Assembly (NCBI RefSeq): GCF_021028975.2
Contig: NC_059433.1
Location: forward strand, 52,204,001-52,268,000
Source: Sphaerodactylus townsendi
Lineage: Eukaryota
DNA: 64,000 nt
Direction of reading: 5' to 3'
The translations under genes were made by a program, and so were the position numbers. Of this stretch, positions 9,101 to 64,000 are shown one piece after another (position 1 is the first letter of the stretch; every line of letters starts with the position of its first letter). The notes beneath the pieces are model-generated. The model worked only from the letters and a program-made list of their open reading frames with translations. It had not been told where the DNA came from and made no database searches.

Positions 9101-10145
9101 CACTAAACACAAACACAATTCAAAACTGATCGACACCAAAAACCTGACAGATCAGAAATAATAGCAGTTATGATTATAATAAAATAGTTGTCCATTAATC
9201 ACTGCAAGATTTAAAGTAGATGATAAAACAAGAATTCATTCACTATATACCTGAAAGGTATTAGAGAATGTTACATAGTGAGCCTTAAAGAAGAAAACGT
9301 ATCAGAGTTGTGGCATGACCACCCAAAATACTTGCTCCAATCACTTATGAACTCAACTTCCTAAAAAGTTGGAATAAGGAGGGGTGCCTTTCATTAAGCC
9401 TTTAAAGGTCAAGAATTATTTCATTTAGTTGAAACATTAGCCAACTTTCTTCCTTGTAGAGCTCAAGGCAACTTACAACATAGTTCTGATACATGCACTT
9501 TTAAACACCTCAGAATTTTGTTAAACTCAATGTTTAGAACACTCTTTTTTTTCAACTCCCCACCCCCATTAAATTTTTATATACTGAATCTTCAGCATCA
9601 TGACGCTTCCCAAAAGCTTGTTTCCTATTCTGTCACATTTTAACTGACCAAGATGCTGCTCTACTGGCTTCTTGTTTTCCTGGGGAAGGGTTAGAATGTG
9701 TTTGCTTATTTATTTATGGTACAATTCTCGGTGAAAGGCGTAAGTCTATGCGTGCAACAGGACGGGGCATTCACTAGCAACAGATCTACACTCATGGGTC
9801 AGGTGGCAATGAGTTCCGCAGTCAACGGTTGCAGTTCATTTGCGGGAATAAAACGTTATATAGCCTCAAGGTCTTTTCCATGTGGTTATTGGTCAAAACC
9901 CCAGAATGAATAATTAAACAAAGTTTCCAAATCCCATTTTTGAGCCCTTAGACCGCTCTATGATGCGCTGTTTACGCACCACGAGCGACATCACCGCTGC
10001 TGGTCACACATGTCTCCGCCAAGGAACGGATTAGGTTATGTCCGTGAATGGCAGCACTGGACGGGTCTGGGCTCTGCAGGATCCCGTGCAGCTGGAGCAG
10101 AAAACCCTGCAGCCCCACGCCAGCTGCAGGCAAGGGTGCCGCCAT
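9..10145 (-). CDS. PRKDC: DNA-dependent protein kinase catalytic subunit (DNA-PKcs), 5' part; coding exons 1-10 (326 codons), continues beyond left edge
   Basis: Exons 9980-10145, 8663-8739, 7738-7830, 6742-6816, 5846-5954, 4221-4333, 2904-3003, 601-656, 478-508, 9-166 all have GT-AG boundaries and splice in frame. Peptides match the DNA-PKcs N-terminus ([29 protein letters not shown]). Head-to-head with MCM4 as in other vertebrates. Confidence 0.97.
478..508 (-). CDS. PRKDC: PRKDC exon 9
   Basis: 31 nt, [10 protein letters not shown]. Confidence 0.93.
601..656 (-). CDS. PRKDC: PRKDC exon 8
   Basis: 56 nt, [19 protein letters not shown]. Confidence 0.94.
1657..2647. mobile_element. Non-autonomous Tc1/mariner-superfamily (Tc2/pogo-like) DNA transposon
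   Basis: TIRs CCGTATATACTCGTGTATAAGTCGA / TCAACTTATACACGAGTATATATGG, TA duplication both sides, internal palindromic repeats. Confidence 0.85.
2904..3003 (-). CDS. PRKDC: PRKDC exon 7
   Basis: 100 nt, [33 protein letters not shown]. Confidence 0.96.
3840..4033 (+). mobile_element. tRNA-derived CORE SINE (Squam3-like), internally deleted
   Basis: A box TGGTGTAGTGG, CCCACCTACCTCACA body, (CTC/CTT)n tail; homologous to 63604-63895. Confidence 0.7.
4221..4333 (-). CDS. PRKDC: PRKDC exon 6
   Basis: 113 nt, [38 protein letters not shown]. Confidence 0.96.
4953..5466. mobile_element. PIF/Harbinger-like MITE
   Basis: TIRs GGCCCCTTCTGCATGGGCCAAC / GTTGGCCCATGCAGAAGAGACC. Confidence 0.7.
5846..5954 (-). 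CDS. PRKDC: PRKDC exon 5
   Basis: 109 nt, [36 protein letters not shown]. Confidence 0.95.
6742..6816 (-). CDS. PRKDC: PRKDC exon 4
   Basis: 75 nt, [25 protein letters not shown]. Confidence 0.95.
7184..7324. mobile_element. 141-bp PIF/Harbinger-like MITE, copy 1
   Basis: TIRs GGCTCATTCCGCACATGCAGAATAATGC / GCATTATTTTGCGTGTGCGGAAGGGGCC; 3-bp TSD TGA. Confidence 0.85.
7738..7830 (-). CDS. PRKDC: PRKDC exon 3
   Basis: 93 nt, [31 protein letters not shown]. Confidence 0.96.
8663..8739 (-). CDS. PRKDC: PRKDC exon 2
   Basis: 77 nt, (A)[33 protein letters not shown]. Confidence 0.94.
9980..10145 (-). CDS. PRKDC: PRKDC exon 1 (start codon)
   Basis: [55 protein letters not shown]; ATG in gtcATGG context, donor GTGCGT. 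Confidence 0.92.
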
Positions 10146-11018
10146 GACACCGCCCGGGCCCCTCAGGAAAATCCAGGCAAAGACTCTCTTTCCGAATCAG
10201 CGCTGCTGGGGGAAGGGGAGCGGAAGTGACGGCATCAAAAGGCGGGGAAAGAAGACTTCGGCCGCGAGGCTTGAACTGTACGGGGGGGGGGGGGGGGGGA
10301 CCGTAGTTGGCTTCACAAGAGGTGGGCGTGGATGGTGACGAAACCATTGTCATTCAAAAGTTAAACGTCGTTCCCCGGTCATAACTAGGAAAGTTAAAGC
10401 AAAAAATAATATTTTATGTGGCATTTTAAAACTTTATTCAAATATCAAGCTGCTGCAACAGTTTCTATTAGAGCTGAGTGCAGTCCCCCCCCCCGCCGCT
10501 TATGGTAATAAACTGGCCCTCCCCGACTCTGTGACCGCGGGATCTGTCAAAACATGGGCGATGCCATTATTAGGATGAGAGTACAACAGCTGTTGAAGGA
10601 AAATGTCCGAAGGCAGATGTCCGCACATGACGCCGAAACGCCACAGTACATATAAACAAAGGCGTTCTTCTTCCACAAACACACCCGAATTGTATGTGGG
10701 AATAATTTTGGCCACCCTTTTCCGGGCTGAGTTGGTATGTCCCATTGTACGATTGGTGGGAATGCCCGCGAACTGGGCGGTCATGTGATTATTTGGCGCG
10801 GAATTTTTCCCTTCTCCCATTGAAGAAATAAACCAAGAAGTAAACCGTGCCCGCGTGGTCTCGGCAGCCAGTTGGGATCGGGCCAGTCAAAAGTGCATGC
10901 TCGTTCGCAAGCTCCCGTGTGGGCGAGAAGACAGTCTGGCATACTAGCTAAGCCGACTCTTGCGTGCCGCTCACAACTCGTTTTTCTTCTTCCCTCTGGC
11001 TTTAGGAGTCTCTCAGCC
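10146..11018. promoter_or_regulatory. Bidirectional CpG-rich PRKDC/MCM4 promoter
   Basis: Divergent ATGs at 10145 and 11019. ETS/GABP CGGAAGTG 10221-10228, E2F-like GGCGGGGAAA 10241-10250, CCAAT (ATTGG) ~10752, GC box GGGCGG 10775-10780, E2F site TTTGGCGC 10792-10799. Probable non-coding MCM4 exon 1 near 10800-10839; acceptor AG at 11004-11005. Confidence 0.85.
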
Positions 11019-25688
<14,670 letters not shown>

Positions 25689-34589: not shown

Positions 34590-35240
34590 GCAAAGGCGCA
34601 TCATGCGTAGTGGGGCTCCAAGACTGCGCTGCAAATACTGCTCAGTGTAATGGGGTTCACTCCTGCACATTGGATTTACTCCTGAATAGATATTCGTGGG
34701 AATATAAACCATTCCCAGGTGACCCATTCGCAACCTCTCAGTTATGCTCTGAAACTATTTCTACTTTCTGTCCACGCTCTCGCCATCCCCTCGTCCCGCC
34801 CGCCACGGCATCCTGCGGAAACGCCGATCGAGGTGGGGCTTGTTTCTAGGAAGTGATGTTACACGCAGGGCAGAAGACGCGCATTTGGCGCCTGTGCGTT
34901 TCCTGGCTGGTGGAGGAGGGGTTAGGGCAAGATGGCCGGATCCACAGGTCTGTGTTGGGGGGGCGGGTGTCTCGGTGCCACCGAGTGGGGTCTCTCCTGG
35001 CGGGAGGGCTGCGCGCATTGTGGGTCTGGGGTGTTGCAGCCGAGCTGTGCCCGCCTTGTGCGGAGTGGCCGGTGTCAGTGCAGCCTGGTGGGGGGGAAGA
35101 AGGTGGGAAGGCCGCGGGGTTGGTGCAGGGGCAGAGAGCCCCCCTCAGTGTGGTGGGGTTCAGAGGGGGCAGCTCAGGTAGTGCAAGAACCATTCTGCTA
35201 GGGGTGGGCTGGTTATTAATTCAGGGGCTTGGCGTTTTCT
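34590..35240 (+). promoter_or_regulatory. UBE2V2 CpG-rich promoter/exon 1 region
   Basis: GC/CpG-rich; ETS GGAAGTG ~34849; YY1-type CAAGATGGC overlapping the ATG. Confidence 0.75.
34932..34947 (+). CDS. UBE2V2: UBE2V2 exon 1 (MAGST)
   Basis: aagATGGCCGGATCCACAG|gtctgt in CpG island; 16 nt, phase fits exon 2. Confidence 0.85.
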
Positions 35241-38200
35241 CTGGGAAAGCCTGCAGGATTTGCATTACCTAGCTGGGAGTTTGCTTCATAAAGAAGCAAA
35301 TAACTCATTCCTTTGAGTACAGTATTGGTGGATGATGTTGACGATAGAGGGGGATCTCACGTCTGACTTCCCTACCTCGAAACGGCAGATATTGGGGGAG
35401 AAGTATGTAACTAAAGGGCAAAATTGGTACACTATAACTGAATCTATGCTGTCGATAATTTTACTGATGGTGTATTAATTAGTGCAGTGCTGAGGGAATG
35501 GCTTGCTTGCTTCTAAGTAAGGTTTACTACTAAGTAAGGTTGTTGCTTGCAACTGTTCCTGTATGTGGTGGTCTTGTTGGCTAACTGCAAAATTCAAGAA
35601 GAAAAGCTGGTTATGTTCATTTCAGTCTGTCTGTGGTGAAACTTGAGGGGGGGTTTTTTGCATCGCTTTTGTTTTCCAAGGTTTACCTCTGTCCCCTTTA
35701 GAATATTGTGAAACAGTGAATCTTACCTGCCATTCAGTGCATATGTTATTGATGAAGATGAAGCTAAACTGCTATAGTAGCTGTAAATAGGAAACTGAGG
35801 AGGAGGGTGGTAATTACTGCCAGTGAATAGGAAGTAAAATAAAATGGTCTTGTGTATATAATACTATTTCCTGCTCATTATTTTTAATTGATCCAGAAAA
35901 AGTGAAGGAACATGATCAACTTTAACTTTGAGAATACAAACCAAAACCATTACACATCAAACTGATATTATAAAACTGACTTGATGACAAAAATCTGGAT
36001 GATGGCACTTGGTTTGGTTCCCAAGGGATTGTAGTAATTTCTTCTTAGATACTGGCTTAACCTGGCTTATCTTGAAGCTGATACAAAATTACTGAATTTT
36101 ATTCCACTACTGCTTGGTTTACACTATGAATATTGCTTCTGGTAAGGTGGAGAAGGTTTGTGACCTGGAACTTTCACAGCAGGGGTGGATCCTGAACTCT
36201 TTATTTATTTAAAATTATTTGGCCCTAGCATGTTACTATTGATAGGAGTATGGCATTTGCTATATATTCTAAAAATGTTATCTAAAAATGTATTCTAAGT
36301 CACAGTGTGTTTTGTTTTCTTTATTTATTATTTTCTATTTTGCCCGTCTCCTATCATGGAACTCAAGATAGTCTGTAAAACTTCACAGGACGCCTTCCAT
36401 CGAGACCCAGACCAGCTCTGGTTTAGCAAAGTTGTCATGTACATCGAAGCATACCCTTGGGAGTATGTACGCTAAACTATATGGTACCATTGCATCAAGG
36501 GAAACCATTCAATATTCTGAAAAGGCGCCATCATTCAAATTTTGCAGAAAATATCTCTTTCAGCTGAATTGCTAACAATTGCTTTGGCCAGTTTCTGTCT
36601 GTCTATAAATGTACTTCTAACAGTTTGAAAACTAGCCAAACAATCACCTCAGCCACCCAAGGAACTGTCTCAAGTAGGTCTTGGAGAAGCAGCATATGCA
36701 TTTTCTGCATGCCTTTTATAAACAAACTGCTATTATATTAAGCCGCGTCATCAATCCTTGTCATAAAATGCTAACCAGAATAAGGTAATGCAGTGCCTTG
36801 GAAAGAGGCTTGGTGGGCTGATGAATGGACTTCCAGTGTTTGGGGCTGATGTTGAGCGAAGGGGAGATACTTGGTCAATCTGACACAACCTTGAGGTTCA
36901 GAAAACAAACCCCTAAGTTTGGACAACATAAAGTGAAGCTCATACCAGCTCAAAACTAATGCTAAGGGGAAGTCATAATTTAAATATTAACGTAGCATAG
37001 AAAGACTGTGCCTTCTGTATTGGGTAGGATACTGACGCAAGCTCTCTACATTGAATGTCAGATGAATTCCTTGGTGAAGAAGAGTGAAGTAACTGGGTGT
37101 AATGAGGCAGACATACCAGTTATTAATATTTACTAAATCTGTTAAGACTAGAGCTTGTTTGTCAACTGGACAGCACTGTTTTAGAATGTGTTGAATCCTC
37201 AGATATTGAGTGATAATTAAAATATAGCAGTAAGTGGTATTGAATCCCAAGCTTTTGAACTTGCCTGATTATCGCAGTGTCCAGGGCAGCTATAAAATTA
37301 TGTATGGCTGGCAAACTGTCTAGCTGTTATAAAAGTAATGACAGATACAATAGCAAATAAGTAATTGAATAAAGAAAGCCATAATCTTTTAAATGGTGGT
37401 TATCCCCTCCACAGTTCACAAAACATTTGGATACTAGAAAGTATCTCAACATTGTACTGCCTTGAGGTCCCATGTCTGAGATCGAATTGTTGTGGTGGGC
37501 AAGCTATTAATCTCAATCTTGGATCCCCATCTGTAAATGGGGATAACTGTCATAACATTCTTGTAATGTAAAATATGGTAAGAGTGAATAATTACTCAAG
37601 GCATGGGTGTGGGGAAAGACTGGAAAGAAGAAGGAGTCTTTGGAATTAAATTTGTTGAGAGTCAGGCTCATTTCGCACATGCAGAATAATGCACTTTCAA
37701 ACTGCTTTCAGTGCTCTTTGAAGCTGTGCGGAATGGCAAAATCCACTTACAAACAGTTGTGAAAGTGGTTTGAAAACACATTATTTTGCGTGTGCGGAAG
37801 GGGCCTCAGTGTGGTCCATTGCAAGGAATTGATTGGTCTAATAAAAAAACTAATTAATCACTCAGAGGCTTTCATACCCATTGTCAATGGGCCTGTCCAC
37901 TATAAGTTGTGAAATATAGGATATTCATGATGCTGAGAAGTTATGATGAAATTAATACAAAGAGTCTGCAGAATTGGAATGAATGAAACTTAATTCAGAG
38001 AGCAGACCTGACTGTGGTTCTGGGAATCTAATTTATTCTTCCCTGAGTGAATCCATAATTTGGTATTTTCTTACTGTGGGAACAGTGGAGAATACAATAC
38101 AGTCACAGAACCATTTTTAGGTTTATTAAGAGTGTTCACGCAAGAAGGAAGTCCTAGGAAGCACTGTGGGGGCACACATTGGCTTCTGTTGTATAAGGGA

Positions 38201-41200: not shown

Positions 41201-44200
41201 CAGTACATAAATTCCCATTATTTAGTCTGTAATGTAAAGTTATGTTGAGAGGTTCTAATTCAAAAACTGTTTCCCATGGCAACCACAAGGCACCATAAAT
41301 CTTAGCTGGAAACAAGAGTAGGAAATTTTAACAAGGTATTGTAAACCTTTTTTATCAAAACAGTAACTTCTTGCTTTGCTAATAGTGTACACTAAGGCCA
41401 TACCTCCTAGTGAAGGAGGAAGAACTGTTTTTGATGCAGCCTGACAGTAGTGGGATAAATGCTTGCTTTTAAAAAATCTGTCCCTTCAGGCTGTGTGCAC
41501 TTTGGCCATGTGCACTTGGCAGGTTTGCCTTAAAATGGAGCTCAGTGGGGAAGCAGGGGAAGCTTTAGATCAGAGGTGTCAAAATCATTTGTTACGAGAG
41601 CCAGATATGCATCAAATGTGACTTGGTTGGGCTGCCTCAGCTAGCACCCTCATAGTAGCCCAGATCAGAACCCTCTGAGACAACCCCCCACACACACACA
41701 CCTGGCCTGGCCCAGGAGTAAGGGAGTTGCTTCAGCTGGCTTGCAGGCCACATCCAGCCCCCAGGTCACATGTTTGACACCCCTGCTTTCGTTAAACAGC
41801 TTAAGCTTTTCTGCATCAGTCTAAGATATAGAGCAGTGGTTCTCAACCTTCTTAATGCTGCGACCCTTTAATACAGTTCCTCATGTTGTGGTGACCCCCA
41901 ACCCTAACATTTATCCATTTTACAGATGGAGAACACTGATGCAAAGAGTCTTAGGCGACCCCTGTGAAAGGGTCGTTCAACCCCAAAGGGGTCCCGACCC
42001 ACAGGTTGAGAACCACTGATATAGAGTCATGGCTCCGGCCAGCCCAAGTAGATTGTTCTTCAGCATCTCAATTGCAGCTGCCTGAACAAATGAGAATCAA
42101 GCTTCTTATATATTTAAGTTCAGGTGTCTATCCTTTATTCTATTGCAGTCATCTGTTAAATTCAGTTGGCACTTTCCTCAGCTCTGTCTCCCAAAATAGC
42201 CACATGAGCATGCTCGTGGTTAGAGCAACTTAGAGTAAGCACTGTATACTTGCATAATAGTTGACCTACACAAGGAATCAAGTGTGTCCGTGTCTGGAGC
42301 AGTTACTTGATGCATGAATATCAGCTGACTTTGAGTCTCTTTTGAAACTGTTCCTTTTATGGGGAAATGATGTGCTGAATGTACAGGGTTTTTGTTTTTT
42401 TAATCCACTCTGAGGAATATGTGTTTCTGGCTTCAGTAAACATGAAGGGAGGAGAATTATATAAGCTGTAGCAATGCAATAAAATTTTAAAAATTAATTA
42501 ATGGAATAAGAAGGGCTTACTGAAGCTCCTTCAACTGAAGATGGTTTCTGTCCGTGCCTTGACCAACAGCCTAACAAATGCTGTTGTTGGGAACCTGTCA
42601 CATGAGACTTATTTTTCATTCTGATTTCTAGCCTGAACTAGAAACTGAGTAATAGAAGTCATATAAGCTTCTAATTTGCAAGATATTCCGTGAACAATGC
42701 AGTTTTAAATCCCACTGTCCATTAATAGGCTGTGAGGTAACAACCTGCAAAATTCCCAAAAGCCCAGGAAGCACCCATTAGGTGGCAAAGGAACATCAAA
42801 CAGGCCGTGTCTTTCGGCATTGCCCTTTAAGAGCCACTTTGGCTGTAGGCTGCTTAAGTAGACTAGTTGTCAGCCCTGCCTTCCCCCACTCAGCTGCAGA
42901 TGTTCAGCAGCAAACATTAAGCCCCGGGGACTCACAGTCACATGCTAACACTTGAACTCTAGCCAAGACATGTAGACAGATGTATCTGCTAAACTCTGTA
43001 TTGCTCCCTACTGCAGTGCTTATAAACCCTTATAAATTAGGACTTTTATTTCACGACTAAGAAAAATGAATTTATGAAAGGAAAAAACCACTTTTTATCA
43101 ACCTCCCAAATAAAAAAATTGGGATAATAAATGGAACCAATTGCTTTAAAATGGAGCCTATGAAAATATGCTAAATTTCACACGTTAAACATGGATCAAA
43201 CTAGTTTGATGCTTTGCTACAGAATTTAAAATTCAAATTGTTGTATTGTGTCAAAACCATTCATTAATTAGGCAGGTTTATTTTTCTCAGTAGTTTGTAG
43301 GTAATGTGTTCCTCTGTAAAGTGTTTTCCATGGAAAAAAGTAAAAAGGTGTGGGTTTGCTTTCACATCCTGCATGTGAGCTCCCAAAGGCATCTGGTGGG
43401 TCACTGCGAGTAGCAGAGTGCTGGACTGGATGGACTCTGGTCTGATCCAGCAGGCTCTTTCTTATGTTTGTAATATTTGTAATGGACAGCATGTCATGCT
43501 ATCAGGTGAAATGAGGCAATCTGTAATTTTGAACATTGCCATTTATATTGCTTCCTTTTTCCGAACAGTTAAAGTCCCTCGTAATTTTCGTTTGCTGGAA
43601 GAACTTGAAGAAGGTCAGAAAGGAGTTGGAGATGGTACAGTAAGCTGGGGCCTTGAAGATGATGAAGACATGACACTTACAAGGTGGACAGGCATGATTA
43701 TTGGACCACCAAGGGTCAGTGGTACAAGTCAACTTTCATTTTTAAAAAATATATGTTTCAACAAAGCTGAAATTCATGGTAGCCATTATTAAACTAAAGT
43801 AAAATCCTTTAGGGGTAGATTTTAGTATTCCATGTCAGTCATTTTGCAACCAGTAGCTGTCTACAATCTTGCTTCCTTAGAGCTGGATGATAAAAAATAT
43901 GCAGAGGGTTTTTTAAAAAAAATAATTCACATCTCCTATCATTAAGAGTAATGACTTTCTTACGCACATTACCTAAGCTATCAAATTTATATTGACATGA
44001 TTTGCCTTTAGTTGCTTCTAGTTCAGGGGTTTGGTTCAGCACAAGTACAGAGCCCTGCTGGGTGTATTCAAACTATTTTGCTGGTAGCATTAGGCACCTC
44101 CGATGGCACTGTGATTTCAACTCTGCCAAGAAATCAAACTTCTTCTTTTAGAAGCTTTAAATGTTTTCAACTGTAGTTGAGTGGCATGTATAAAAAATCT

Positions 44201-47200: not shown

Positions 47201-50200
47201 TCAATTTATTTTATTTTTAATCCACATTTCTCCTATGGCAAGCCTCCGATCAGATTGCAGTGGAAATTAAAACATGTCAAACATAAAATTCACGGTTAAA
47301 ACCTGTGCGCATGTAAGAAAAACCCAATAACTGGTCAAATTAGCTGTTGCTGTCCTAAATAGCAACAGACCTACATTGTCATCCTTAGTAGTCTACCTCT
47401 TTGTCAACTGACAAAGTTCTCCTAAGTATCTTGGCCTTGCATATTTCACGGACGGGTGGCTGTAACAGAGAAGGCTGGGCACAGCTTAATTAACGTCTGT
47501 CTTTGCAATAATGGTGGCATTTGTAGATTGAGTAAGAGAAGTACTAGTTATTGCTCTGGTTATATATGTAAAAATCTTAAAAATGGGATCATTGGGTATA
47601 ATATCTAATCACACTTCAAGGGTGTCTGGAATACTTAAAATATCTTGCTATGAAAGTAGTGGCAGCAGCCCCAACTTGCTGCCGATTAGGGCAGATAATT
47701 GTATTTGTATTTATCTTCGTCCCATCATAGAAGAACTTACAGAGGAGTTTGTTCATCTTAGGAGTTTGTTCATCCAGCCAGGTGCTGTGCATGTGTATCC
47801 CCAGGTGTGCAGGAAACCTCACATAAAAGTAAGATCTGCACACATGTCTTTCCTCTCTCAACCAACAACTAGTTGCACAGTGGGAGCCCTTTTAATAGCC
47901 AAAATCCCCTCACATCATCTGTTCAGATAGAAGAGTGGACAAGAGAATTCAGTCCCTGCTGCAGCTCATTCCCTGATGAGCAACATTTTAGGTATTTTGG
48001 ATGTGCTTAATCTGTTCACCAGAACTGGGTCAACCGGCATCATTTCATTATTTAATAGTGCCTTTTGCAAGTGTATTTTCATATCATGAATAATTCTTTC
48101 TCTTTCATTACTAGACAAATTATGAAAACAGAATATACAGCTTGAAAGTAGAGTGTGGCCCTAAATATCCAGAAGCACCTCCAACAGTTAGATTTGTAAC
48201 TAAAATTAATATGAACGGAATAAATAATTCCAATGGAATGGTAAGTTAACAGTGTATTATGAGCAACCTGTTTCACTTCACAAAAAAGCTGTCGGGGATT
48301 ATGATGGGTAGGAAATAATGTATTTGTTTCCCATTACATGTCTTGAACTGAACCTTGCTGGTTCAGAGACACAATTATCTAATACACAATTCTCTTTCCC
48401 CCAGTAGCCCACAGAAGGAACACAGAGGCCAAAACTTCCCCTATTGCTGCCTCCCAGCATCTTGTATTCAGAATTAAACTGCTTCCAAATAGGGAGATTC
48501 CAGTCACCCATCATAACTGTTAATTAATCTTTCACTTGTGAATTTTTCCCTTACGTTTGTGCAGAGGGAAAAACCCACAAATGATTACGCATGTGTATCT
48601 CTGACCCACATGTCCACACTAGGAAAGAAATACATCTAGAATGTATGTTGAGAGTCCTTATATACTAATTATGGGAAACTCTTTCAGAATGCCGTAGAAT
48701 AAATTACATAGATTGATCAGTTATTGTTTGCTTTGTGCCGAATTCATGTATCAGTTGTTTAAACTGCACAATTACATACACAGTCAAGGCGTTAATCATC
48801 GTATTTTTGATGCACATCTTTATGCTGTACCCAAAGCTGAAGAAGTTACATAATGAAAGTGAAAATCAATCTCAATCAAATCTAGAAAGTAAAGTGCAAA
48901 ATAACAGGCTTAGCTGCGTTTCCCTGTCAAGTGACTCTGTGTTTACGTTGTATTGATGTATGTAGTTTGTGTTCAGGTCAAATAGGAAACCAAATGTTTA
49001 AACTGGAATGAGATAGACAGAGCTCCATGGCTACTAGCAGTCCTTTACCTTTCCTTCACCTGGAGTTCAGACAACTCAAAATGCAGCTCCAGTTTTTCAT
49101 CAAAGTTAGATGTTGCCGTTGTGAAAGGGTATCTTTCAGCAGTGCATTAGAAAAATGTGAATAAATTGATTTCGCTGCAGTCTTGCTTGTTGTTACTGGG
49201 TAATGTGTGATTGTGTCCTATTCGTGTTTTTAGTTTGGTATTGTGAATTGCTTTGGAAATGTAAACCAAGTTATCTGACAGTAAAATAAAGGAGTAATGC
49301 CTTGAGCAGTCAGTTGTGGAGAAGCGAGACATGGATGTGGAGATAATGCACTGCCCCTTCTCTCCTGTACTGCTGAGTTCTTTTCTTTTCCTTGTGTATT
49401 CCCCTAACAGGCAAAACAACAGCTTAGGTCAGGAAAAGGTTTCAGGGAGGAAAAAGTTCTACACATCCCTCCCACTTGTGCATATCCCTCTCTGCCTTGT
49501 CCTGCAGCTGCTATTTTGCAATAAAAATATGCTGAAAGATCTGTTTCCAGCACCTTTGGTGCCCCAGATGCCTGTGTTCTTCAGTAGCTTCCTAGTATAT
49601 CACAGGAGTTTGTTGTATTGGTTGGTGTTAAAATGCTGGTAGCTATGAAGTCTTCTTTTTAAATAGCTTGAATTTTGTTCACTCACCAAATTCTGTGTAT
49701 GGAACAGTTTGTCTTTTTAAATATAAAACTTTAATCACATCTTTCTCAAGTTACCCTTGAAAAAATGCACAATGACATGATAATAAATTAATGCTTTTGG
49801 TATGGAGTTGTGTCTAATGATTGTTGTCTGTCAATAGAGCTAGGGAGCCATTTTTACCTATTCTTGCCACTGCCACCACACATTCTGTAGATCTCTTCAT
49901 GCACAGCGCAGATTCTGCCACATCCCTGGAACACTGGAGGCAGCATTTGAGGGGATGCAGTGGGAGAGGACAAGAGGCAGGAAAATTGTGTTCTGAGAAT
50001 AGTGTGCAGCACATATATACTTGGATTCAAACCAATATTCACAAGTTTCTTTGGAATGTGTTGCTTTAAGGTAGCCTAGCCTAACCATAAACCTTCTCAC
50101 CCTCATTTTTTATGGTTTGTATTTTAGTAGGAGTGGTTCCCACACCCAGGAAAATCTTTTATAGTAACAGCCAAAAAAATCCTCACCTTGAATATATACA

Positions 50201-50534
50201 TTCATGATGCTTAATGACGAGGTATAGATAACTTTTGCTCATGGAACCAGTTTTAGCACCAAGCTGTATTGCTTAACCTTCTGGTGTGTGTTTGAAGATT
50301 AAATGCAAGATGGATACTACAATTGTAAAATTAGGTATTCTGCATTCTTTATTCCCTATTTAAACGTATGCTTTCTGTCCTTNNNNNNNNNNNNNNNNNN
50401 NNNNNNNNNNNNNNNNNNNNNNNNNNNNNNNNNNNNNNNNNNNNNNNNNNNNNNNNNNNNNNNNNNNNNNNNNNNNNNNNNNNNNNNNNNNNNNNNNNNN
50501 NNNNNNNNNNNNNNGACAAACTTACAACAATTAA
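34932..50534 (+). CDS. UBE2V2: Ubiquitin-conjugating enzyme E2 variant 2 (MMS2), ~144 aa, 4 exons; exon 4 mostly in N gap
   Basis: Exons 34932-34947, 43569-43714, 48115-48240, ~50388-50534; [48 protein letters not shown]; conserved synteny downstream of MCM4. Confidence 0.95.
37665..37805. mobile_element. 141-bp PIF/Harbinger-like MITE, copy 2
   Basis: Near-identical to 7184-7324; 3-bp TSD TCA. Confidence 0.85.
41571..41785. mobile_element. hAT (Charlie-like) MITE
   Basis: TIRs CAGAGGTGTCAAA / TTTGACACCCCTG; degenerate 8-bp TSD CTTTAGAT/CTTTCGTT. Confidence 0.7.
41834..42018 (-). mobile_element. SPIN (Space Invader)/URR1-type non-autonomous hAT element
   Basis: TIRs CAGTGGTTCTCAACCT / AGGTTGAGAACCACTG, perfect 8-bp TSD ATATAGAG; subterminal GCGACCCTTTAATACAGTTCCTCATGTTGTGGTGACCCCCAACC and TCTTAGGCGACCCCTGTGAAAGGGTCGTTC match SPIN/URR1 as recalled. 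Confidence 0.88.
43569..43714 (+). CDS. UBE2V2: UBE2V2 exon 2
   Basis: [49 protein letters not shown]. Confidence 0.96.
45915..46036 (+). mobile_element. 5S rRNA-derived SINE, 3' truncated
   Basis: ATCTCATCAGATCTGGGAAGCTCAGCAGGG..GTTAGTGTTTGAATGGGAGA..GGCAGTGGCAAACCACTTCTG. Confidence 0.7.
47029..47168. mobile_element. Palindromic PIF/Harbinger-like MITE
   Basis: 38-bp perfect inverted arms GGCTGATTCCGCATGGGCCAAAAACAGCAGTGTGAAAA; internal GGTGT(G/A)AAA repeats. Confidence 0.8.
48115..48240 (+). CDS. UBE2V2: UBE2V2 exon 3
   Basis: [42 protein letters not shown]. Confidence 0.96.
50383..50514. other. Assembly gap or masked stretch, 132 N
   Basis: Run of n. Confidence 0.99.
50388..50534 (+). 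CDS. UBE2V2: UBE2V2 exon 4 coding part (start inferred; only last 20 nt visible)
   Basis: GA CAA ACT TAC AAC AAT TAA = (G)QTYNN* directly after the gap; polypyrimidine tract directly before the gap. Confidence 0.8.
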   Translation, partial: XXXXXXXXXXXXXXXXXXXXXXXXXXXXXXXXXXXXXXXXXXXQTYNN

Positions 50535-51194
50535 TTTTAGCTGAATCCGAAACTTGTCTTAAACAACTTCTACTTATGTTAATGTCTTGATTCAATCTCA
50601 CAGTGCAAAACTACCCACACATTAAGAGTTTTCTTCTGGTATACATGAACTGGACATATGAAAGAATATATATATGTGTGTGTGTGTAGGTATATATGCA
50701 TATATACACACATATATATCTATGCCCCATATGTTTTCAGGCACAATCAGAGAGAAAAGGCAGCACATTTTTTTTCGTCTTTAGCAAGGCACTATCATTT
50801 TAACATAAGCCTGAAGTAGCCTAAAATTGGAGCTCCAGTGTTTCGAGACGAAAGCATGACAAGAAGTGCCAGGTTGCTGTGGAGTAAGATGTTTCAGAAA
50901 AACCTTTTCTCAAGAAGAAAAAGAAATAAAAATGGCATGCTTTATCCATCTTGCTTTAGTCAAAGAGCTGCGGGTGAAATTGTTTTAAAGTAGTGGGTAC
51001 TGCAACTACCATTGCTCAACTTGTTTAATTTTTTGCAAAGGTGTGGGTGCTGAATGCTAGTAGTGTCACAGAATACAGTCAGGATTGTTTTGATACTTGT
51101 ATTTATAAAATGAGGGAATGATTTTTCTCTTAAGCGGCTCCTGTGTGTTACATGTAATGGACATTGCAAAATATTTGTTTACAGTCTTTGTTCT

Positions 51195-51200
51195 AATAAA
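51195..51200 (+). terminator. Probable UBE2V2 polyadenylation signal (alternative AATAAA at 50925-50930)
   Basis: TTGTTCTAATAAACCATGCATTT in AT-rich 3' UTR. Confidence 0.55.
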
Positions 51201-53480
51201 CCATGCATTTAAGTTTTAGTGAAACAAAACAAAAAAGTAAAAAAGGAAATAGGTGTATGGCAAATGTGACTGAGAATAAAGTTAGTCTTCAAATGTAAAT
51301 AAAATGTGGAAAGTATCCTCTGAGGCTGTGCCATTTCTGTATTAAGTAATTTATTCCTGTAGTACCTTGCACAGACAAGGAGTGAACCAACTAACATAAA
51401 ACTAATCTGTGTCCAACTTCCATTTTACTTCATTTGATAGCCAGAACTGCTGCTGGATTGTTTCAATGGAGCTGTTTGGTTAAGGGCTATCCTGAAGTTA
51501 ACTTGTGCAAATATAGCTTTTGTAAGGCTTTGGAAGCAGAATGATTCTCTAGTTGTAACTCACTGTTTTCATGGCTGTTCGTTTATAACAGTTATCAACA
51601 TACCTGCAAAAATCAGCGCAACGGTTAGAAAGAGCACCATTTCTGGATAGCTTTGGTTTCATGTTTCTGCTGGCAGAATCAAGAGGTGTAGAGGGACCAT
51701 GGAAGTTGTTGCAGTATGAGGCATGGAGTTGTCTGGAACATGCAGTCCCTTCCAGCAAAAATAGAACCAACAATGAGATGTTAATGGGGGGGGCGGGGGG
51801 GGATGGCTGTTCAGATGGTCAACATCAGCAATTTCCTATCTAAAACTGAAAAGAAAGCTGTGCCTTTGCTATGAACTTTGGTGGGTCTAGAGCCAGTCCA
51901 AGTATGGGTTGCTTGTTTGGCCAGTCTTTTGCTTCCCTGAGAATTGTAGCTGGTCAGCAGTTTCAGAGCAGAAATCCATTTTGTACAGAAATCCATTTTT
52001 AGCAGCAGCTATGCTGATTGTTCATCAAGTGGACTAGCCGAAACAGCACCAGCTTTTCTCTTCTTCATTCCCTCAAGCAAATGCTCAGAAATGAACTTCC
52101 TCTAAGCTTTAAGGTTCTATTTAGTTATAAATATTGATGGTCTCTGCTGGTTTGGCCAAGTCATGTGTCAGACTGCTGTCTATTCAGCTGAATGGTTGCA
52201 GGAACTTAAAAGTAAAGGAGCTTGCAGGAGATCCTTTTCTCCCCATGCATGAGAAGAGTGGAAGGTATTCCGTGATTTTTGAAAAGCTCCTTCATAATTT
52301 CCCTCACATGTACAATTTAGTGAACATCCAAGTGTCTCCACCATCACAATATGCCTTTTGAGTTGTGAAGGCATTTTCTTAGATATTGTACCAGTTCTCT
52401 TGGGCAGTGGCCATAGACATGCATGAGGATAAATCCAGAGCTTTTACTCCTGGATACACCAGAAAGCAAACGGAATTCAAGAAACTCATCAGAAGGTCTC
52501 TAAATGTTTGCTTACATTATGACTAATTATCACAGTTTAATTTCTTTTACCTCTCTCCACTTTCTGTAACATTTTAGAAAACATACTCCTATAAAGCAGA
52601 ATGGCCTCATTGGAAAAAGAGAAGCTGGTAAAGTAAATTTTGCACTGGATCAGCTGTTAGGATTACAGTAGCACGATAGAACCAATAACCAATTGAACTT
52701 GGTTACTTCAAGCAGAAGAAGTGCAAAACAGCAATTCAAACAGTATATCATATAATAACAAGCATGTAACTGGGCTTTTGTTCTGACTCAAGAAACATAA
52801 CATTTAACTGTGCCTGGAACCAAACATTTCTAGTATCGTTGAATTCAAAGGGCAATTTGCTGGTCAGAGATGTTAGTTGTTTGAGTTAACGGTGATTGCC
52901 ATACACCATAACAACTGTATGAAACATTGTAATTGGCTAGCTATTTATCTGATGACATAAAAAATTATTTGCACTGGGAAATATAGTTGCTACGTATATA
53001 GTTAAGAACTGGCTAGTTTCCCTTTCTGTTCATTTGCTGACCAAAAACTAAATTTCATTTTTGCTTAGGAAGGCCATATTCTTATTTTACTTGCTGTGTC
53101 ACTATATCTGTTTAAATCCTATTGTTCTGATGAGTGGGGGGGGGGGGAAGGAGGCCCTCCCATGCTGACATATACTATCTCCCCATATGATGAGTACTGC
53201 TCTCATCCACAGAAATGTGTCTCATTTCTTTATGTCTTTATGCTTGTCACATCTATGACAGACGATGAAGTGACAATGTGTGCCCTCTAGGTGGCAGCAT
53301 GCTGCAAAGCACCTGAAAATGCAGCGTTTGACCAATAAAAAAAGCTAGTGAACTTTGTGTGTGCCACTCTATCTTCATGTGAAAAGTTTTGAAATTTTCT
53401 TTCTTTTCTGCCCTAGCTGTCAAAATTTTGACCAAAGACACAAACAGTGTAAATCCTAAGAACACTTTTCTGAGATAGAC

Positions 53481-58800: not shown

Positions 58801-59769
58801 TTTAAACACAAGAAGTGGCTGACTCTCTCCCCCAAACCCACCCATGAATCACTAGTTAATTAAAAAAATCTAAGCAGCTGTACATAATATTGAATTTGTG
58901 ACATTTATGGGTAAGGTAGGTGGCCTGTAAAACCAACAACTCCCAATAATATCATTCCACTTTGAATGCTGGAGAATTGCTAAGACAATTGTGTTTTGTT
59001 TGATATTTCTAAAGTACACTTTATACAGTTGCAACAACATGGAAAGCGGACCATCACCCAGACCTTCTGGAATGGATGAACAAGTTAATGATATACTCAA
59101 CAATGGCAAAGCTAACATCCTTGGTGAACAGTAGATCCTCTACAGAGTATGAAAGAAGATGGCAAGTTTTTGTGGATTATACTAATTAAAGACTTGGATA
59201 GTTATATAAATTAATAACTTGTATAATTAGAATGTATAAGAATGATGTGAATAAGGATAAACCATGGTAAAGATTGTATAATAATTTCTTGATTCTTAGA
59301 AACTATTGTTAGAATTTAAGATGCTATTAAATCGAATGATATAGATTTACGCAAGCTTCACTATGATTATGTTTAATTTTAAGTTTATTTTTAAAATAAA
59401 ATAACTTTAAAAGTACATTTTACGTTAAATTATTATTAATATTTTTAATGAGTCCAGTCTATTGTAAATATGCTTGGCTTTAAACCTATTTGTGAGTTCA
59501 CATTCTCTGCCTTGTTAAGCAAAGTGGTGGCTTTCATTTAATTGCCTGTCATACCTTTCTGGTGGGAAAGTCACTCATAAAACAAGATCTGGTTCTGACA
59601 GACTATGAATAACACAAACACACTGGTTCTGTGTGCTGTTGCAACAACCCAACCCACAACATAAGACAGCAAATCCTTATTACATGGGTAGAATCTACTG
59701 CCTTGGCTTTCCCTCAGTCAGGAGCCTGGATCAGATATTTAGGTCTGAACCTTTTTGCTGTTCAGTAAA

Positions 59770-60017
59770 ATGCCCTCTGTCCTTTCTTGTAAGAGGTGTG
59801 CAGATGATGACAGTGAGCAGTTGTTGCTGGCAGAGGAGAGACCAGATTTGATTGAGTCTTTAGATCCTGGATGCAATGCCAGCAATAACAGACGTTGCTT
59901 CAGAAGAACCAGAGTCCGAGAAAAGGAAAGAGAACGTCTGTCCATCCATGAGAGTCTGGATTATTTGACTTCACATAGCAAAGTTTACAAGAAGTGGTTG
60001 CAGGGCCAAACATACAG
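59770..60017 (+). CDS. CLC-like gene, first coding exon
   Basis: Acceptor TTTTTGCTGTTCAG ends at 59765, aaaATG at 59770; MPSVLSCKRCADDDSEQLLL...ESLDY...GQTY; donor AG|GTAATA. Confidence 0.8.
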
Positions 60018-60080
60018 GTAATATCTTTAATATTTGCGCTGAAAAATATTACTAAAATACTACTAGTAAGTAGTTGGAAA

Positions 60081-60124
<44 letters not shown>

Positions 60125-62534
60125 TTTGTTTGGGGCAGGGAGGGGGGCCAGGGATAATTGGAGAAAGATTTCTTCTTTATAACATTGTGGCACTGGCCAG
60201 TGTCTGATTTACATTGTGCTAGGTTTACCCTGTTCATTTATCTTGCAAAATGCTTACTCCACCATCCTGGATAAATATTTTGGAAAAAGTGTCATTTAAA
60301 CTATTAAAACTTTAAGCAAAGCAAGCATTTTTGTAATAATTTAAATTCTTCCAGCCTGTCTGTTTACAGATAAGAAAGGACAATTTTTCCCCTTTTCAGT
60401 TGAATCCCTAGAAAATGCAGAAGACAGTTTAGCTGGTGCCTATTCTTAACAGAGGGGAAAGTACACTGAAGAATAGGGTAGGCAATCTTTGTGCCAAAAC
60501 CTCCAAAATGCCTATTGGTGATGATGTTGCTGTGATCGTAAAGAGAAATTATCTATGTTTGTGTGGGTGGCTGGGTGGCTGGATGGCTTGAACCTTTGCA
60601 TTGTAAGCAAAATGGTCTTGTCGACCAGTCTTCAGTGTCATTTTTCGATGAGTTGCTGTGCCGTTCACAGGTTTAAAATACCTTCCTATTCTTGCTATCC
60701 ACTTTAAGTTGCATTCAAATAGATTAAAGCAAAAATCCTTTGATGCCACCTACTGGTGAAAAGCAGTAAACAGTGCACTAATCTTTCCGAGAAAATAGAC
60801 AGTTAGGACATGCAAGAAAGTGACCCATTCCAAAGGGAAAATAAAATAACAGTCCAGTGGCATAATCTTTCATTACCATCAGACAAGATCATCTGGAATA
60901 AACTGTGTTCATTGCACTGCTGTTGTATTTTGCTGTTACAGACTAACATTGCAGCCCCTCTGGAATTATATGCCAAAGGAAGAAATTTATAAATGCCTAC
61001 ATTAGAACAACTTTTAAGCTATGCTACAAAAAGTATGGCAAGGAAGAAAGTTAACTAACTGGAGTTGTGTACTGTGGTGGATTCTGCATGGTAGAAATAT
61101 AATGGATTAAAAAAGGGAAATATCCCAGCCTGAGGAATAACTTTGCATGGGTCCCTTCCACAAAGCAGGATTGACCCATTATATTTTCCTCAACCTGTTT
61201 TTTTTTTTCAAAAAACGCTAAAATTGCAATCTTTTTGAAAAATCCCTGGTTGAACCTGCTACCAAGGGAACTGCATGGGTGTCCAACCACTTAATTTTTC
61301 CTGCCCCACTGCCTGTTCTTCCACCTTACATCATGCCAGTTTCATTTCTGCTGAGCTGCTGACCAGTGCGATAGCCCACCATTTCAGAAATGTGCCCCAA
61401 GCACATTTTCTCCCCTTGGCAGCGACTGTGAGCGCCATTTCACCAAAATGTGTACAGCAACGGATTCACAATAAGCTGTTTCCTTCTCTTTCTGTTTTTT
61501 GGGTGCTCAGAGCAGGTAGCTAGGCAGATACACACCTTTGGATGTGGATGGGACGTATTGCTTTTCTCCCTTTTTGGACATAATTTATTATTTTGTATAT
61601 CACAACATTAAGGTGGTTGCATGCTTCATGTTTACATGTGTTCTGGTTTCAAAGCCATAAACTCTCTCCCCTCCCCCATCTGTAGAAATGGGAGAGAAAG
61701 GTCCTGCTTCAGCTCCTGTGGTTACTGTAGATTCTCCACCAATCGGAATTGTTCCCTTAGCAGAAAGTGGGAGCAGGCAGAAAGGGGACTGTGGTGATGG
61801 AACAGCCAATCAGAACGCAGGAAAACCAGATTTTTTTTAATCTGCATGTTTGCATTGAAAAAAAAGCAGGTTTGTGCAAAGGGGCAGAAATAAAATGATT
61901 TTTTTTCCTTCACTGAAAATGGGCACCCATCCAAAGGACAAAAATAGAATAGATTCAAAAATAATGGATGTAACCTGTTATTATTTGGGGATGAGGCTTT
62001 CTGGTTTGTTTTCTTTGCTGCTAGTACTGCAAATTGTTTCTAAAGAACCCACTTCCTGACTGTGTCGTACGTGCATAGGGAATGAGAGGAAGATGGAGTA
62101 TGTTGTACCTCATGAGGGAAGTGAAGCTGAAGAGATTGGTGAAGTTTAGAAGTTTCTTGATCAGCGGTCGTATTGATCCAAGCAGCCGAGCTGAAAAACA
62201 TATGTGCATTAGATGTTTCTCCCCTACCCATAATGTCTAAAAAAATATAGTTGTATGTTTCAAATGGAAGCTGAAGAATACTAAAGTAGATGCTAGATGT
62301 ACTGATACACTCACTCAGCTTTTGAGATTCCTTAACCAAAATACTTCCGAGATTACTGCAACTGATACACAATTCTGAGTTTTAATTTGTTTTTTAATCT
62401 TTAGAATGGACTGGGATCGGTGGTTGTTGATGGGACTTATTGGAATCATAGTGGGAACACTGGGTTTCCTGATCCATCAAACAATTGATTATCTCATCAA
62501 TCTGAAATGGGAACTGGTGGAAAACTATATTCAG
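59770..62534 (+). CDS. CLC-family chloride channel / H+/Cl- exchanger (ClC-6/7 branch, 'chloride channel protein C/D-like'), first two coding exons; continues beyond right edge
   Basis: Exons 59770-60017 and 62405-62534 splice in frame (AG|A = Arg) to ...HESLDYLTSHSKVYKKWLQGQTYRMDWDRWLLMGLIGIIVGTLGFLIHQTIDYLINLKWELVENYIQ. ESLDY plus the W..LIG...G helix B pattern is typical of the ClC-6/7/plant CLC branch. Confidence 0.85.
60083..60120. repeat. (TG)n microsatellite
   Basis: ~19 perfect TG units in the CLC-like gene intron. Confidence 0.95.
62405..62534 (+). CDS. CLC-like gene, second coding exon (first transmembrane helix)
   Basis: T-rich acceptor ending CTTTAG; MDWDRWLLMGLIGIIVGTLGFLIHQTIDYLINLKWELVENYIQ; donor CAG|GTAAAA. 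Confidence 0.85.
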
Positions 62535-63036
62535 GTAAAATGGAAGAAAATAATGAATAACCTTCTATTTCATGTACCTCATGTACCTTTGAGTGGTACT
62601 AAACATAAATCAACACTTGACAACCTTTAGCATTAAGCTATTTGTTCCTGAGTCTCTTTCTCTACCAACACTGAACAAAAGTACTGTTGAACTATTCATT
62701 TACTGGTATGCATGGGATCCAGTGGCGAAGCTATAACGGGAACATCCAGGGACAATTGACCCAGGCGCCCCACAGTTAAGTCATGTGGGGGGTGCACAAT
62801 CGCCCCCAAACCCCTCCCCCTTCCTGCCTCGCCTGGCCCCACCCCAACAGACTGCTCCCGGCAGAGCCGACTGAAAGAGTAATCTGTTCGGGACTGCTCC
62901 CTCTGCTGGCTGAAAGAGCAGTCTGTTGGGGAAGGGCCAGGCCAAGGAGGGAAGGAGGCCAGGCCCTGCCAGGCTGCCCCAGACCACTGTGGCACCAAAA
63001 GTAAGTGGAGTGCGGGGGAGGGGGCGGGGCCCTGCA

Positions 63037-63400
63037 GAAGAAGAAGAAGAAGAAGAAGAAGAAGAAGAAGAAGAGGAGGAGGAGGAGGAGGAGGAAGAGG
63101 AGTTTGGATTTATATCTCCCCTTTCTCTCCTGCAGGAGACTCAAAGGGGTTTATAATCTCCTTGCCCTTCCTCCCTCACAACAAACACCCTGTGAGGTAG
63201 GTGGGGCTGAGAGAGCTCCGAGAAGCTGTGACTAGCCCAAGGTCACCCAGCTGGCATGTGTGGGCGTGTACAGGCTAATCTGAATTCCCAAGATAAGCCT
63301 CCCACATTGAAGCTCAAAGAGCTGACAGAGTTTCGGGAATCAAACCCGGTTCCTCCAGATTTGATACACGAGCTCTTAACCTCCTACAACACTGCTGCTC
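63037..63400 (-). mobile_element. Full-length young Squam3-like SINE with long (GAA)n(GAG)n tail
   Basis: Reverse-strand A/B boxes, CORE body, trinucleotide tail 63037-63101. Confidence 0.82.
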
Positions 63401-63603
63401 CAAGGTTGATACAAGGTTTTATTTATTTATTTATTTGATTTTTATACCGCCCCATCCCCAAAGGGCTTGACAATCCCCAAGGTTGACAGCTTGACAATCT
63501 CCAAGGTTAATACAAGGTTGACAAGGTTGATACAAGGTTGACAGCTTAGAACATAATTAAGACAGTCATGTAGCAAATTAAAATAAAAGTTCTTTGTAAG
63601 GAG

Positions 63604-63895
63604 AGAGGGTGGTGTAGTGGTTAAGAGCAGGTGGATTCTAATCTGGAGAACCGGGTTTGATTCCGCACTCCTCCACCTGAGTGGCAGAAGCTTATCTGGT
63701 GAATCAAATGTGTTTCCACACTTCTACATTCGTGCTGGGTGACCTTGGACTAGTCGCAGTTCTTTGGAACTCTCTCAGCTCCACCTACCTCACAAGGTGT
63801 CTGTTCTGGGGAAAGGAAGGGAAAGGAGCTTGTAAGCCACCTTGTGTCTCCTTACAGGAGAGAAAGGTGGGATATAAAACCAAACTCTTCTTCTT
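63604..63895 (+). mobile_element. Full-length Squam3-like SINE
   Basis: A box TGGTGTAGTGG, B box GGTTTGATTCC, (CTT)n tail. Confidence 0.82.
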
Positions 63896-64000
63896 TATTA
63901 GTGAACTCCATTCTGGATGGAGATAGAGGTTTTCTAGTCTAATCTATCTAGCTGAATGGTAAGGGATGCTAACTACATAGGGTGTGTGGGTGGTGGAGAG

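Follow-up and report, generated by a model that had tools for sequence, protein, structure and literature searches.

Is the vertebrate CLC repertoire complete with the nine mammalian genes on which CLC biology and disease genetics are built? The question is raised by a 64,000-nucleotide stretch of the Sphaerodactylus townsendi genome (RefSeq assembly GCF_021028975.2, contig NC_059433.1, positions 52,204,001 to 52,268,000 of the forward strand; hereafter, the window), for which an earlier note, made from the letters alone, had claimed two clean in-frame exons of an extra, divergent CLC gene. Both exons proved to be present on the plus strand, with conserved splice sites. We consider it probable (roughly 85%) that they are the first two coding exons, encoding 126 of ∼830 residues, of an intact, single-copy CLC gene, and that this gene is a third member of the branch that holds ClC-6 and ClC-7.

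Two coding exons and their gecko orthologue

The window exons are closest to an 832-residue RefSeq model, "chloride channel protein C-like," of the gecko Heteronotia binoei: identity is 82% for exon 1, which aligns to residues 1 to 84 of that protein, and 93% for exon 2. A 12-kb segment of the window (50.7 to 62.7 kb) and the Heteronotia locus are collinear, with nucleotide identities of 69 to 82%, and the latter preserves the sequence around the ATG as well as all four splice junctions. By these alignments, the window gene is the squamate orthologue of the RefSeq "chloride channel protein C-like" models. Its features in the window are as follows.

59429-59769, plus strand: conserved upstream block, promoter or 5' untranslated region (UTR), with a polypyrimidine tract and a CAG acceptor ending at 59765
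59770-60017, plus strand: coding exon 1; start codon ATG at 59770-59772, cytoplasmic N-terminus, ending in a split Arg codon
60018-62404, plus strand: intron 1 (GT...AG, 2387 nucleotides), donor and acceptor conserved in the Heteronotia locus
62405-62534, plus strand: coding exon 2; last part of the N-terminal linker (DWDRW), then the first membrane helix (helix B in CLC numbering)
62535-64000, plus strand: beginning of intron 2, past which, outside the window, lie at least 14 further coding exons

The donor GT of exon 1 occupies 60018-60019; exon 2 is bounded by an acceptor AG at 62403-62404 and a donor GT at 62535-62536. The codon split between the exons (AG/A) encodes Arg, giving ...QTYRMDWDRW... 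across the junction, and the 126 residues, where the earlier note had counted ∼125, are read with zero stops and zero frameshifts. Exon 1 carries an acidic dileucine motif, DSEQLL (residues 14 to 19), and the signature HESLDYL.SHS.VYKKWL; together, the exons show the motif HESLDYLTSHSKVYKKWL, followed by DWDRW and one hydrophobic helix. The CAG acceptor, with its strong polypyrimidine tract, ends four bases 5' of the ATG and is conserved base for base in the Heteronotia locus. Since an acceptor stands directly before the start codon, a non-coding exon may lie upstream. The earlier note had begun the feature at 59766, which directly follows this acceptor, but the start codon itself is at 59770. 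The surrounding block, 59429-60103, is 82% identical to positions 9674-10334 of the Heteronotia locus.

The single exons are too short to be recognized by Pfam, which returned no match. When compared with the PDB, exon 1 gave a chance match only, and exon 2 matched helix B of ClC-7 (residues 125 to 161) at an E value of ∼2, among helices of MthK and MalF, which is not significant alone. The assignment to the CLC family therefore rests on orthology to full-length proteins: the window fragment joins the family through its 82 to 93% identity and its collinearity with the Heteronotia gene, and full-length orthologues carry PF00654 (Voltage_CLC) and PF00571 (CBS) in precomputed Pfam annotation. Exon 1 alone, compared with 1.84 billion proteins, found seven relatives (E values of 3e-29 to 4e-4), all of them N-terminal pieces that start with MPS or MSS and contain the block ESLDYLPSHS.VYKKWL; one of them, from the Komodo dragon, is a 634-residue model that bears the name "Chloride channel protein B, partial."

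At least 16 coding exons, spread over 98 kb, make up the gene in Heteronotia, where 6.2 kb separates exon 2 from exon 3; this spacing explains why only two exons appear in the window. Consistent with this structure, a tblastn comparison of the Heteronotia protein with the window matched the two exon intervals and no further CLC exons. Between the two species, the ratio of nonsynonymous to synonymous substitution rates (dN/dS) is 0.51 for exon 1 (cytoplasmic), 0.12 for exon 2 (membrane), and 0.34 overall, at a dS of ∼0.2; the coding sequence in the window is thus under purifying selection.

Two points weigh against an intact gene. The window holds only 15% of the coding sequence, and it is from relatives that we assume the remainder to be intact in this species. 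Moreover, no RNA run was found with this stretch: the four runs that match it are genomic DNA, in which no joint of exon 1 to exon 2 occurs, depth is even across the exons and the intron, and the joints that do occur are all within the intronic repeat. A decaying pseudogene in which exons 1 and 2 have by chance stayed intact would be compatible with the sight of two exons only, with runs limited to genomic DNA, and with the repeated loss of this CLC gene in other lineages (see below). We regard it as very unlikely, however, given the dN/dS values above at a dS of ∼0.2, the intact and conserved start codon and splice sites, and a full-length model in every squamate sampled. Elsewhere in the clade, public transcriptome assemblies contain spliced full-length orthologue transcripts from a frog (91% identical to Rhinoderma) and a ray (87% to Mobula), as well as two unplaced invertebrate-type members of 860 and 870 residues. 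An intact gene remains our reading.

Place in the CLC family and distribution across animals

How is this gene related to the known CLCs? We compared clade members with all PDB chains, using phmmer or profile scores. The bit scores were as follows.

Heteronotia binoei protein: human ClC-7, 328; chicken ClC-7, 325; ClC-6, 317; AtCLC-a, 302; ClC-3, 180; ClC-2, 134; ClC-1, 123; ClC-K, 111
Profile of 50 clade sequences: ClC-6, 436; human ClC-7, 431; chicken ClC-7, 422; AtCLC-a, 385; ClC-3, 217; ClC-2, 177; ClC-1, 155; ClC-K, 129 (best PDB E value, 1e-129)
Chicken member (partial, 491 residues): human ClC-7, 228.8; ClC-6, 228.0; chicken ClC-7 (7jm6), 227.7; AtCLC-a, 191; ClC-3, 127; ClC-2, 103; ClC-1, 83; ClC-K, outside the matches listed (E > 1e-20)

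Frog, shark, and sea anemone members ranked the PDB CLCs in the same order. ClC-7, ClC-6, and AtCLC-a thus score far above ClC-3, which is followed by ClC-1, ClC-2, and ClC-K, in agreement with the earlier placement on the ClC-6/ClC-7/plant branch. The marker on which that placement had been based, ESLDY, is present in the window and aligns identically to ClC-7. ESM Atlas added only generic CLC clusters, one of them named "chloride transport protein 6-like" and the others plant.

The claim that the gene is distinct from both CLCN6 and CLCN7 is likewise upheld. The chicken member scores 228 bits alike against chicken ClC-7, human ClC-7, and ClC-6, so the same-species ClC-7 is no closer than the human protein or a different CLC; scores against ClC-6 equal those against ClC-7, and birds have a separate CLCN6. 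A fast-evolving orthologue or vertebrate-specific duplicate of CLCN7 or CLCN6 could account for the rank of ClC-7 and ClC-6 as top PDB matches and for two motifs in common with ClC-7 (ESLDY and, in the second CBS domain, LGLRHL...TRKDL). We give this explanation next to no credence: it would not predict near-equal scores to ClC-7, ClC-6, and a plant CLC in an animal whose own ClC-7 scores no higher, nor the presence of CLCN6 and CLCN7 as separate genes in birds. The shark member, moreover, is 47 to 50% identical to cnidarian, echinoderm, and mollusc members (785 to 850 bits) but reaches only ∼330 bits with ClC-6 or ClC-7, and the clade signatures GPEGP and ND.Q.LL recur in protist and green algal relatives.

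A lineage separate from ClC-6 and ClC-7 is therefore the reading we carry forward. The shark member scores 815 bits against that of Nematostella, and its scores against ClC-6 and ClC-7 are less than half of this, which argues that the lineage split from ClC-6 and ClC-7 before cnidarians and bilaterians diverged. By these comparisons, its standing as a third, pre-bilaterian member of the ClC-6/ClC-7 branch is largely supported, and the lineage is probably older than animals, with an older eukaryotic origin. A caution is that the status of third member rests on bit scores, same-species paralogy, and clade-specific motifs. Among the latter is the sequence ES.DYL(P).HS..YK.WL, followed by DWD.W and helix B, which is common from cnidarians to birds and is found in the window.

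With the Komodo dragon model as the query, at least 120 matches were orthologues of ∼800 to 835 residues with Voltage_CLC and CBS domains. Their sources are squamates, turtles, crocodilians, birds, frogs, salamanders, caecilians, sharks, and rays. A shark query listed full-length relatives with 45 to 50% identity (785 to 850 bits) in sea urchins, starfish, a crinoid, hemichordates, amphioxus, a tunicate, corals, and sea anemones and, among protostomes, in a nemertean, a brachiopod, and molluscs; the same query listed the bichir Polypterus, at 54% identity. Another search extended the range to chelicerates, a copepod, green algae, and unnamed metagenomic eukaryotes. At an annelid locus, only the N-terminal exon was found within 10 kb. 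Orthologues go by the RefSeq names "chloride channel protein C-like," "D-like," "B-like," and "A-like" or, in bird genome annotations, "CLCB protein"; we presume that the RefSeq names derive from the ClcA to ClcD entries of Dictyostelium. The likeness to invertebrate "C/D-like" proteins that had been proposed is real, since the vertebrate members group with them at the identities given above. The gene is also more widely kept than the earlier note supposed: reptiles have it, as claimed, and so do birds, amphibians, cartilaginous fish, and a bichir.

Mammals, teleosts, insects, and nematodes were not among the best 120 matches of any search, an absence from the listings that is not proof of absence from the genomes; orthologues from these groups at comparable similarity would have scored well above the weakest matches listed. 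The proposed loss in placental mammals is borne out to the extent that no mammal is among 120 best matches that reach sharks, cnidarians, and molluscs, and teleosts, which the earlier note did not mention, also appear to be without the gene among the matches listed. Polypterus senegalus is the only ray-finned fish represented among those matches; its branch is long (0.75), and it keeps the gating and proton glutamates.

A maximum-likelihood tree of 46 sequences, all of them clade members, follows the species tree. The vertebrates are monophyletic with a Shimodaira-Hasegawa-like approximate likelihood ratio test (SH-aLRT) value of 100 and a stem of 0.59 changes per site, and within them the tree recovers squamates with geckos branching first and turtles as sister to crocodile plus birds. 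Vertebrates are single-copy for the gene, unlike some invertebrates, in which it has been duplicated: Porites lutea has two copies on one contig, and amphioxus has two well-separated pairs of paralogues.

Gene models for this lineage are already public under machine-given names in well over 100 species, so its existence as such is not new. We found no relevant paper in the openly accessible full-text literature for the RefSeq names, for "CLCN8," or for a ClC-6/ClC-7 phylogeny with lineage losses, nor, in the literature searched, functional data on any clade member, a further point against our reading. "Largely uncharacterised," as the earlier note put it, thus holds for the literature but overlooks the machine annotation. 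An HGNC-based survey of bird ion channels that lists CLCN1 to CLCN7 and CLCNK for zebra finch and chicken omits this gene because it started from human gene names (PMC6679542). The evidence supports a real, conserved, and apparently undescribed tenth vertebrate CLC lineage, and the vertebrate CLC repertoire, built on the nine mammalian genes, is thus incompletely described. The extra paralogue is strongly conserved; chicken, Xenopus, and Anolis have it, as do sharks and many invertebrates, and in chicken and Xenopus it is experimentally accessible. If the reading is true, the lineage is absent from most major model organisms because it was lost in mammals and teleosts and is not found in insects and nematodes; since it has been lost repeatedly, one may ask which transporter fills its place in mammals.

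Pore residues, sorting motifs, and predicted function

Is the protein a channel or an antiporter? The pore-forming region lies outside the window, and we read its residues in the orthologues that cover it; mean column identity over 50 vertebrate clade sequences is 72%. CLC Cl−/H+ exchangers have a signature of two glutamates, and CLC channels have Val at the position of the proton glutamate. The helix R position was set by an ungapped HMMER alignment to ClC-7, anchored on the conserved Pro-Ile-Met after it; we take the ClC-7 residue at this position to be its central Tyr, from our knowledge of the ClC-7 sequence. The residues are as follows.

Gating glutamate: canonical GKEGP; Glu is invariant in the clade, as GPEGP (GYEGP in some protists), overall G(P/L/S/Q)E(G/A)P
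Proton glutamate: second E of LEE; invariant in the clade (LEEV), as LF..EEV(A/S)SFW in all members covering the region
Selectivity motif: canonical GSGIPE; GSG(I/L/M)PE in invertebrates, PSGLPE in vertebrates
Central serine: canonical Ser; squamates, amphibians, sharks, most birds, and invertebrates have Ser, turtles have Tyr, the alligator has Cys, and some birds have Phe, Leu, or Cys
Central tyrosine (helix R): Tyr in ClC-7; most invertebrates have Phe, molluscs have Val, all tetrapods and sharks have Ser, and Polypterus has Ala

The earlier note had named the gating and proton glutamates as the residues by which to tell channel from antiporter, and both are present in every orthologue covering the region; of its third motif, GSGIPE, invertebrates keep the GSG(I/L/M)PE form, but vertebrates do not. 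In turtles, Tyr stands at the central serine position (APYGLPEV) and Ser at the central tyrosine position, which looks like a swap of inner-gate residues.

By homology, the protein would be a membrane transporter that forms homodimers and carries a pair of CBS domains at its C-terminus, and it is predicted to carry out voltage-dependent 2Cl−/H+ exchange through the invariant gating Glu (GPEGP) and proton Glu (LEEV). With both glutamates invariant, Cl−/H+ exchange would be the most likely mechanism, one that we favor slightly. A point on the other side is that the protein lacks the central tyrosine, which in CLC exchangers belongs to the inner gate, and that the central serine varies in turtles, alligator, and some birds, so tight 2:1 coupling is not assured. 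The substitutions of Ser for the central Tyr, of Pro for the Lys of GKEGP, and of PSGLPE for GSGIPE may have functional consequences.

A rival reading keeps the same gene and lineage but makes the vertebrate protein an uncoupled or weakly coupled anion conductance with a weakened inner gate. In ClC-ec1, H+ transport becomes progressively uncoupled from that of Cl− when small residues replace Tyr445, and the Ser that aligns without gaps to the central Tyr of ClC-7 is fixed in all tetrapods and sharks; the Phe or Val of invertebrates at this position and the long vertebrate stem, at 0.59 changes per site, would fit as well. The tyrosine hydroxyl is gone and, in vertebrates, the aromatic ring with it, which makes weakened coupling or a channel-like leak a serious alternative. 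We nevertheless hold such a conductance to be a possible but less likely outcome, because both exchanger-defining glutamates are invariant across the whole clade, where CLC channels have Val at the proton-glutamate position, and because the transmembrane core is under strong purifying selection, as the 72% column identity indicates. Exchange, perhaps with altered coupling, remains the mechanism we favor.

Sorting motifs bear on where the protein would act. An N-terminal dileucine motif of the form [DE]xxxL[LIM], to which DSEQLL in the window belongs, was found in 40 of 66 vertebrate proteins, and an acidic C-terminal motif of the DSDEELL type was found in 41 of the 66; neither occurred in any of 33 invertebrate proteins. 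By analogy with ClC-7 and sorting receptors, these motifs suggest that the vertebrate protein may reside in the endosomal or lysosomal membrane.

Put together, these observations allow a tentative history that we think somewhat doubtful as a whole: jawed vertebrates would ancestrally have had ten CLC lineages, the tenth of pre-bilaterian age, and in the vertebrate stem this tenth lineage would have lost the central Tyr, kept both catalytic glutamates, and become an endolysosomal transporter with altered coupling. If this is true, the clade offers a natural experiment in CLC coupling, in which stoichiometry, leak, or anion selectivity has changed. The natural substitutions themselves (at the central Tyr, at the Lys of GKEGP, and, in some sauropsids, at the central Ser) bear on how Cl− is coupled to H+ in CLC exchangers.

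Genomic neighborhood and comparison with known CLCs

The earlier note had placed the gene next to UBE2V2, and it lies directly downstream, on the same strand, in the window, in quail, and in Xenopus. From the UBE2V2 stop codon (∼50.53 kb) to the CLC start codon is 9.2 kb in the window. In quail and Xenopus tropicalis, the gene called directly upstream of the CLC gene encodes a UQ_con protein, is on the same strand, and ends 6 to 7 kb before the CLC gene; tblastx identifies it as UBE2V2. Since the same arrangement is found in quail and Xenopus, it dates at least to the tetrapod (amphibian-amniote) ancestor, consistent with vertical inheritance. The parts of UBE2V2 that we located in the window are as follows.

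43565-43759, plus strand: UBE2V2 coding exon; phmmer against the PDB gives UBE2V2 at an E value of 4e-30 (residues 50 to 114 of the open reading frame)
48100-48246, plus strand: UBE2V2 coding exon; 88% identity by tblastx to the UQ_con gene that precedes the CLC gene in Xenopus
50515-52685, plus strand: end of the UBE2V2 coding sequence (...QTYNN, stop at ∼50532-50534) and conserved 3' UTR; matched by tblastx to the quail locus at the point where the UQ_con gene called there ends

An assembly gap (run of N) at ∼50380-50510 falls inside the last UBE2V2 coding exon, of which only the end is readable past the gap. The 2.1-kb block at 50687-52685, 77% identical to the gecko locus and conserved to quail as well, is probably a long UBE2V2 3' UTR, judging by its position and conservation. 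Further upstream, MCM exons lie at ∼16 to 24 kb on the plus strand, and GC-rich stretches (0.47 to 0.48) occur at the expected MCM4 promoter (10000-11100) and at the expected promoter and first exon of UBE2V2 (34600-35300). Intron 1 of the CLC gene contains a (GT)n microsatellite at 60084-60122 and, at ∼61.0 to 62.0 kb, a high-copy interspersed repeat over which contig depth in the DNA runs climbs from ∼25 to 75 to hundreds or thousands; depth climbs again from 62.7 kb (62700-63000). A (GAA)n/(GAG)n run at 63036-63100 is flanked by two tRNA-like copies of a short interspersed nuclear element (∼63090-63400 and ∼63600-63900), pieces of which also match several places in the Heteronotia locus.

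Among known systems, the invertebrate "chloride channel protein C-like" proteins (those of Nematostella, Acropora, Branchiostoma, Lingula, and sea urchins, for example) belong to the same clade, at 45 to 50% identity over the full length, and share the N-terminal signature (Y/F)ES.DYLP.HS.VYK.WL, GPEGP, and MEEVSSFW. They differ from the vertebrate members in keeping the canonical GSG(I/L/M)PE, in having Phe (Val in molluscs) at the position of the vertebrate Ser, and in lacking the vertebrate dileucine motifs. Invertebrate members also have a second conserved N-terminal motif, FF(A/Q)(K/R)GR(D/E)FESRYVNH, that is absent from vertebrates. Green algal and protist relatives have GPEGP and the helix R motif ND.(Q/H).LL in common with the clade, and plant AtCLC-a, at 385 bits against the profile, stands somewhat further off by score than ClC-6 and ClC-7.

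ClC-6, a late-endosomal Cl−/H+ exchanger, is as close to the clade as ClC-7: it is the best profile match (436 bits) and has the same catalytic glutamates, but it is encoded by a separate gene in birds, and the clade differs from it at the same pore positions as from ClC-7. ClC-6 presumably owes its 869 residues to a long insert between the CBS domains, which the clade lacks. ClC-7, the lysosomal 2Cl−/H+ exchanger, is matched by clade queries in the PDB at E values of 1e-96 to 1e-128. It has in common with the clade ESLDY before helix B, the order of helices, the gating and proton glutamates, two CBS domains with a near-identical motif in the second, and an N-terminal sorting motif of the dileucine type. 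The clade differs from ClC-7 in having GPEGP rather than GKEGP, PSGLPE rather than a GSGIPQ/E-type motif, and Ser rather than the central Tyr, and its gene sits in another chromosomal neighborhood, next to UBE2V2.

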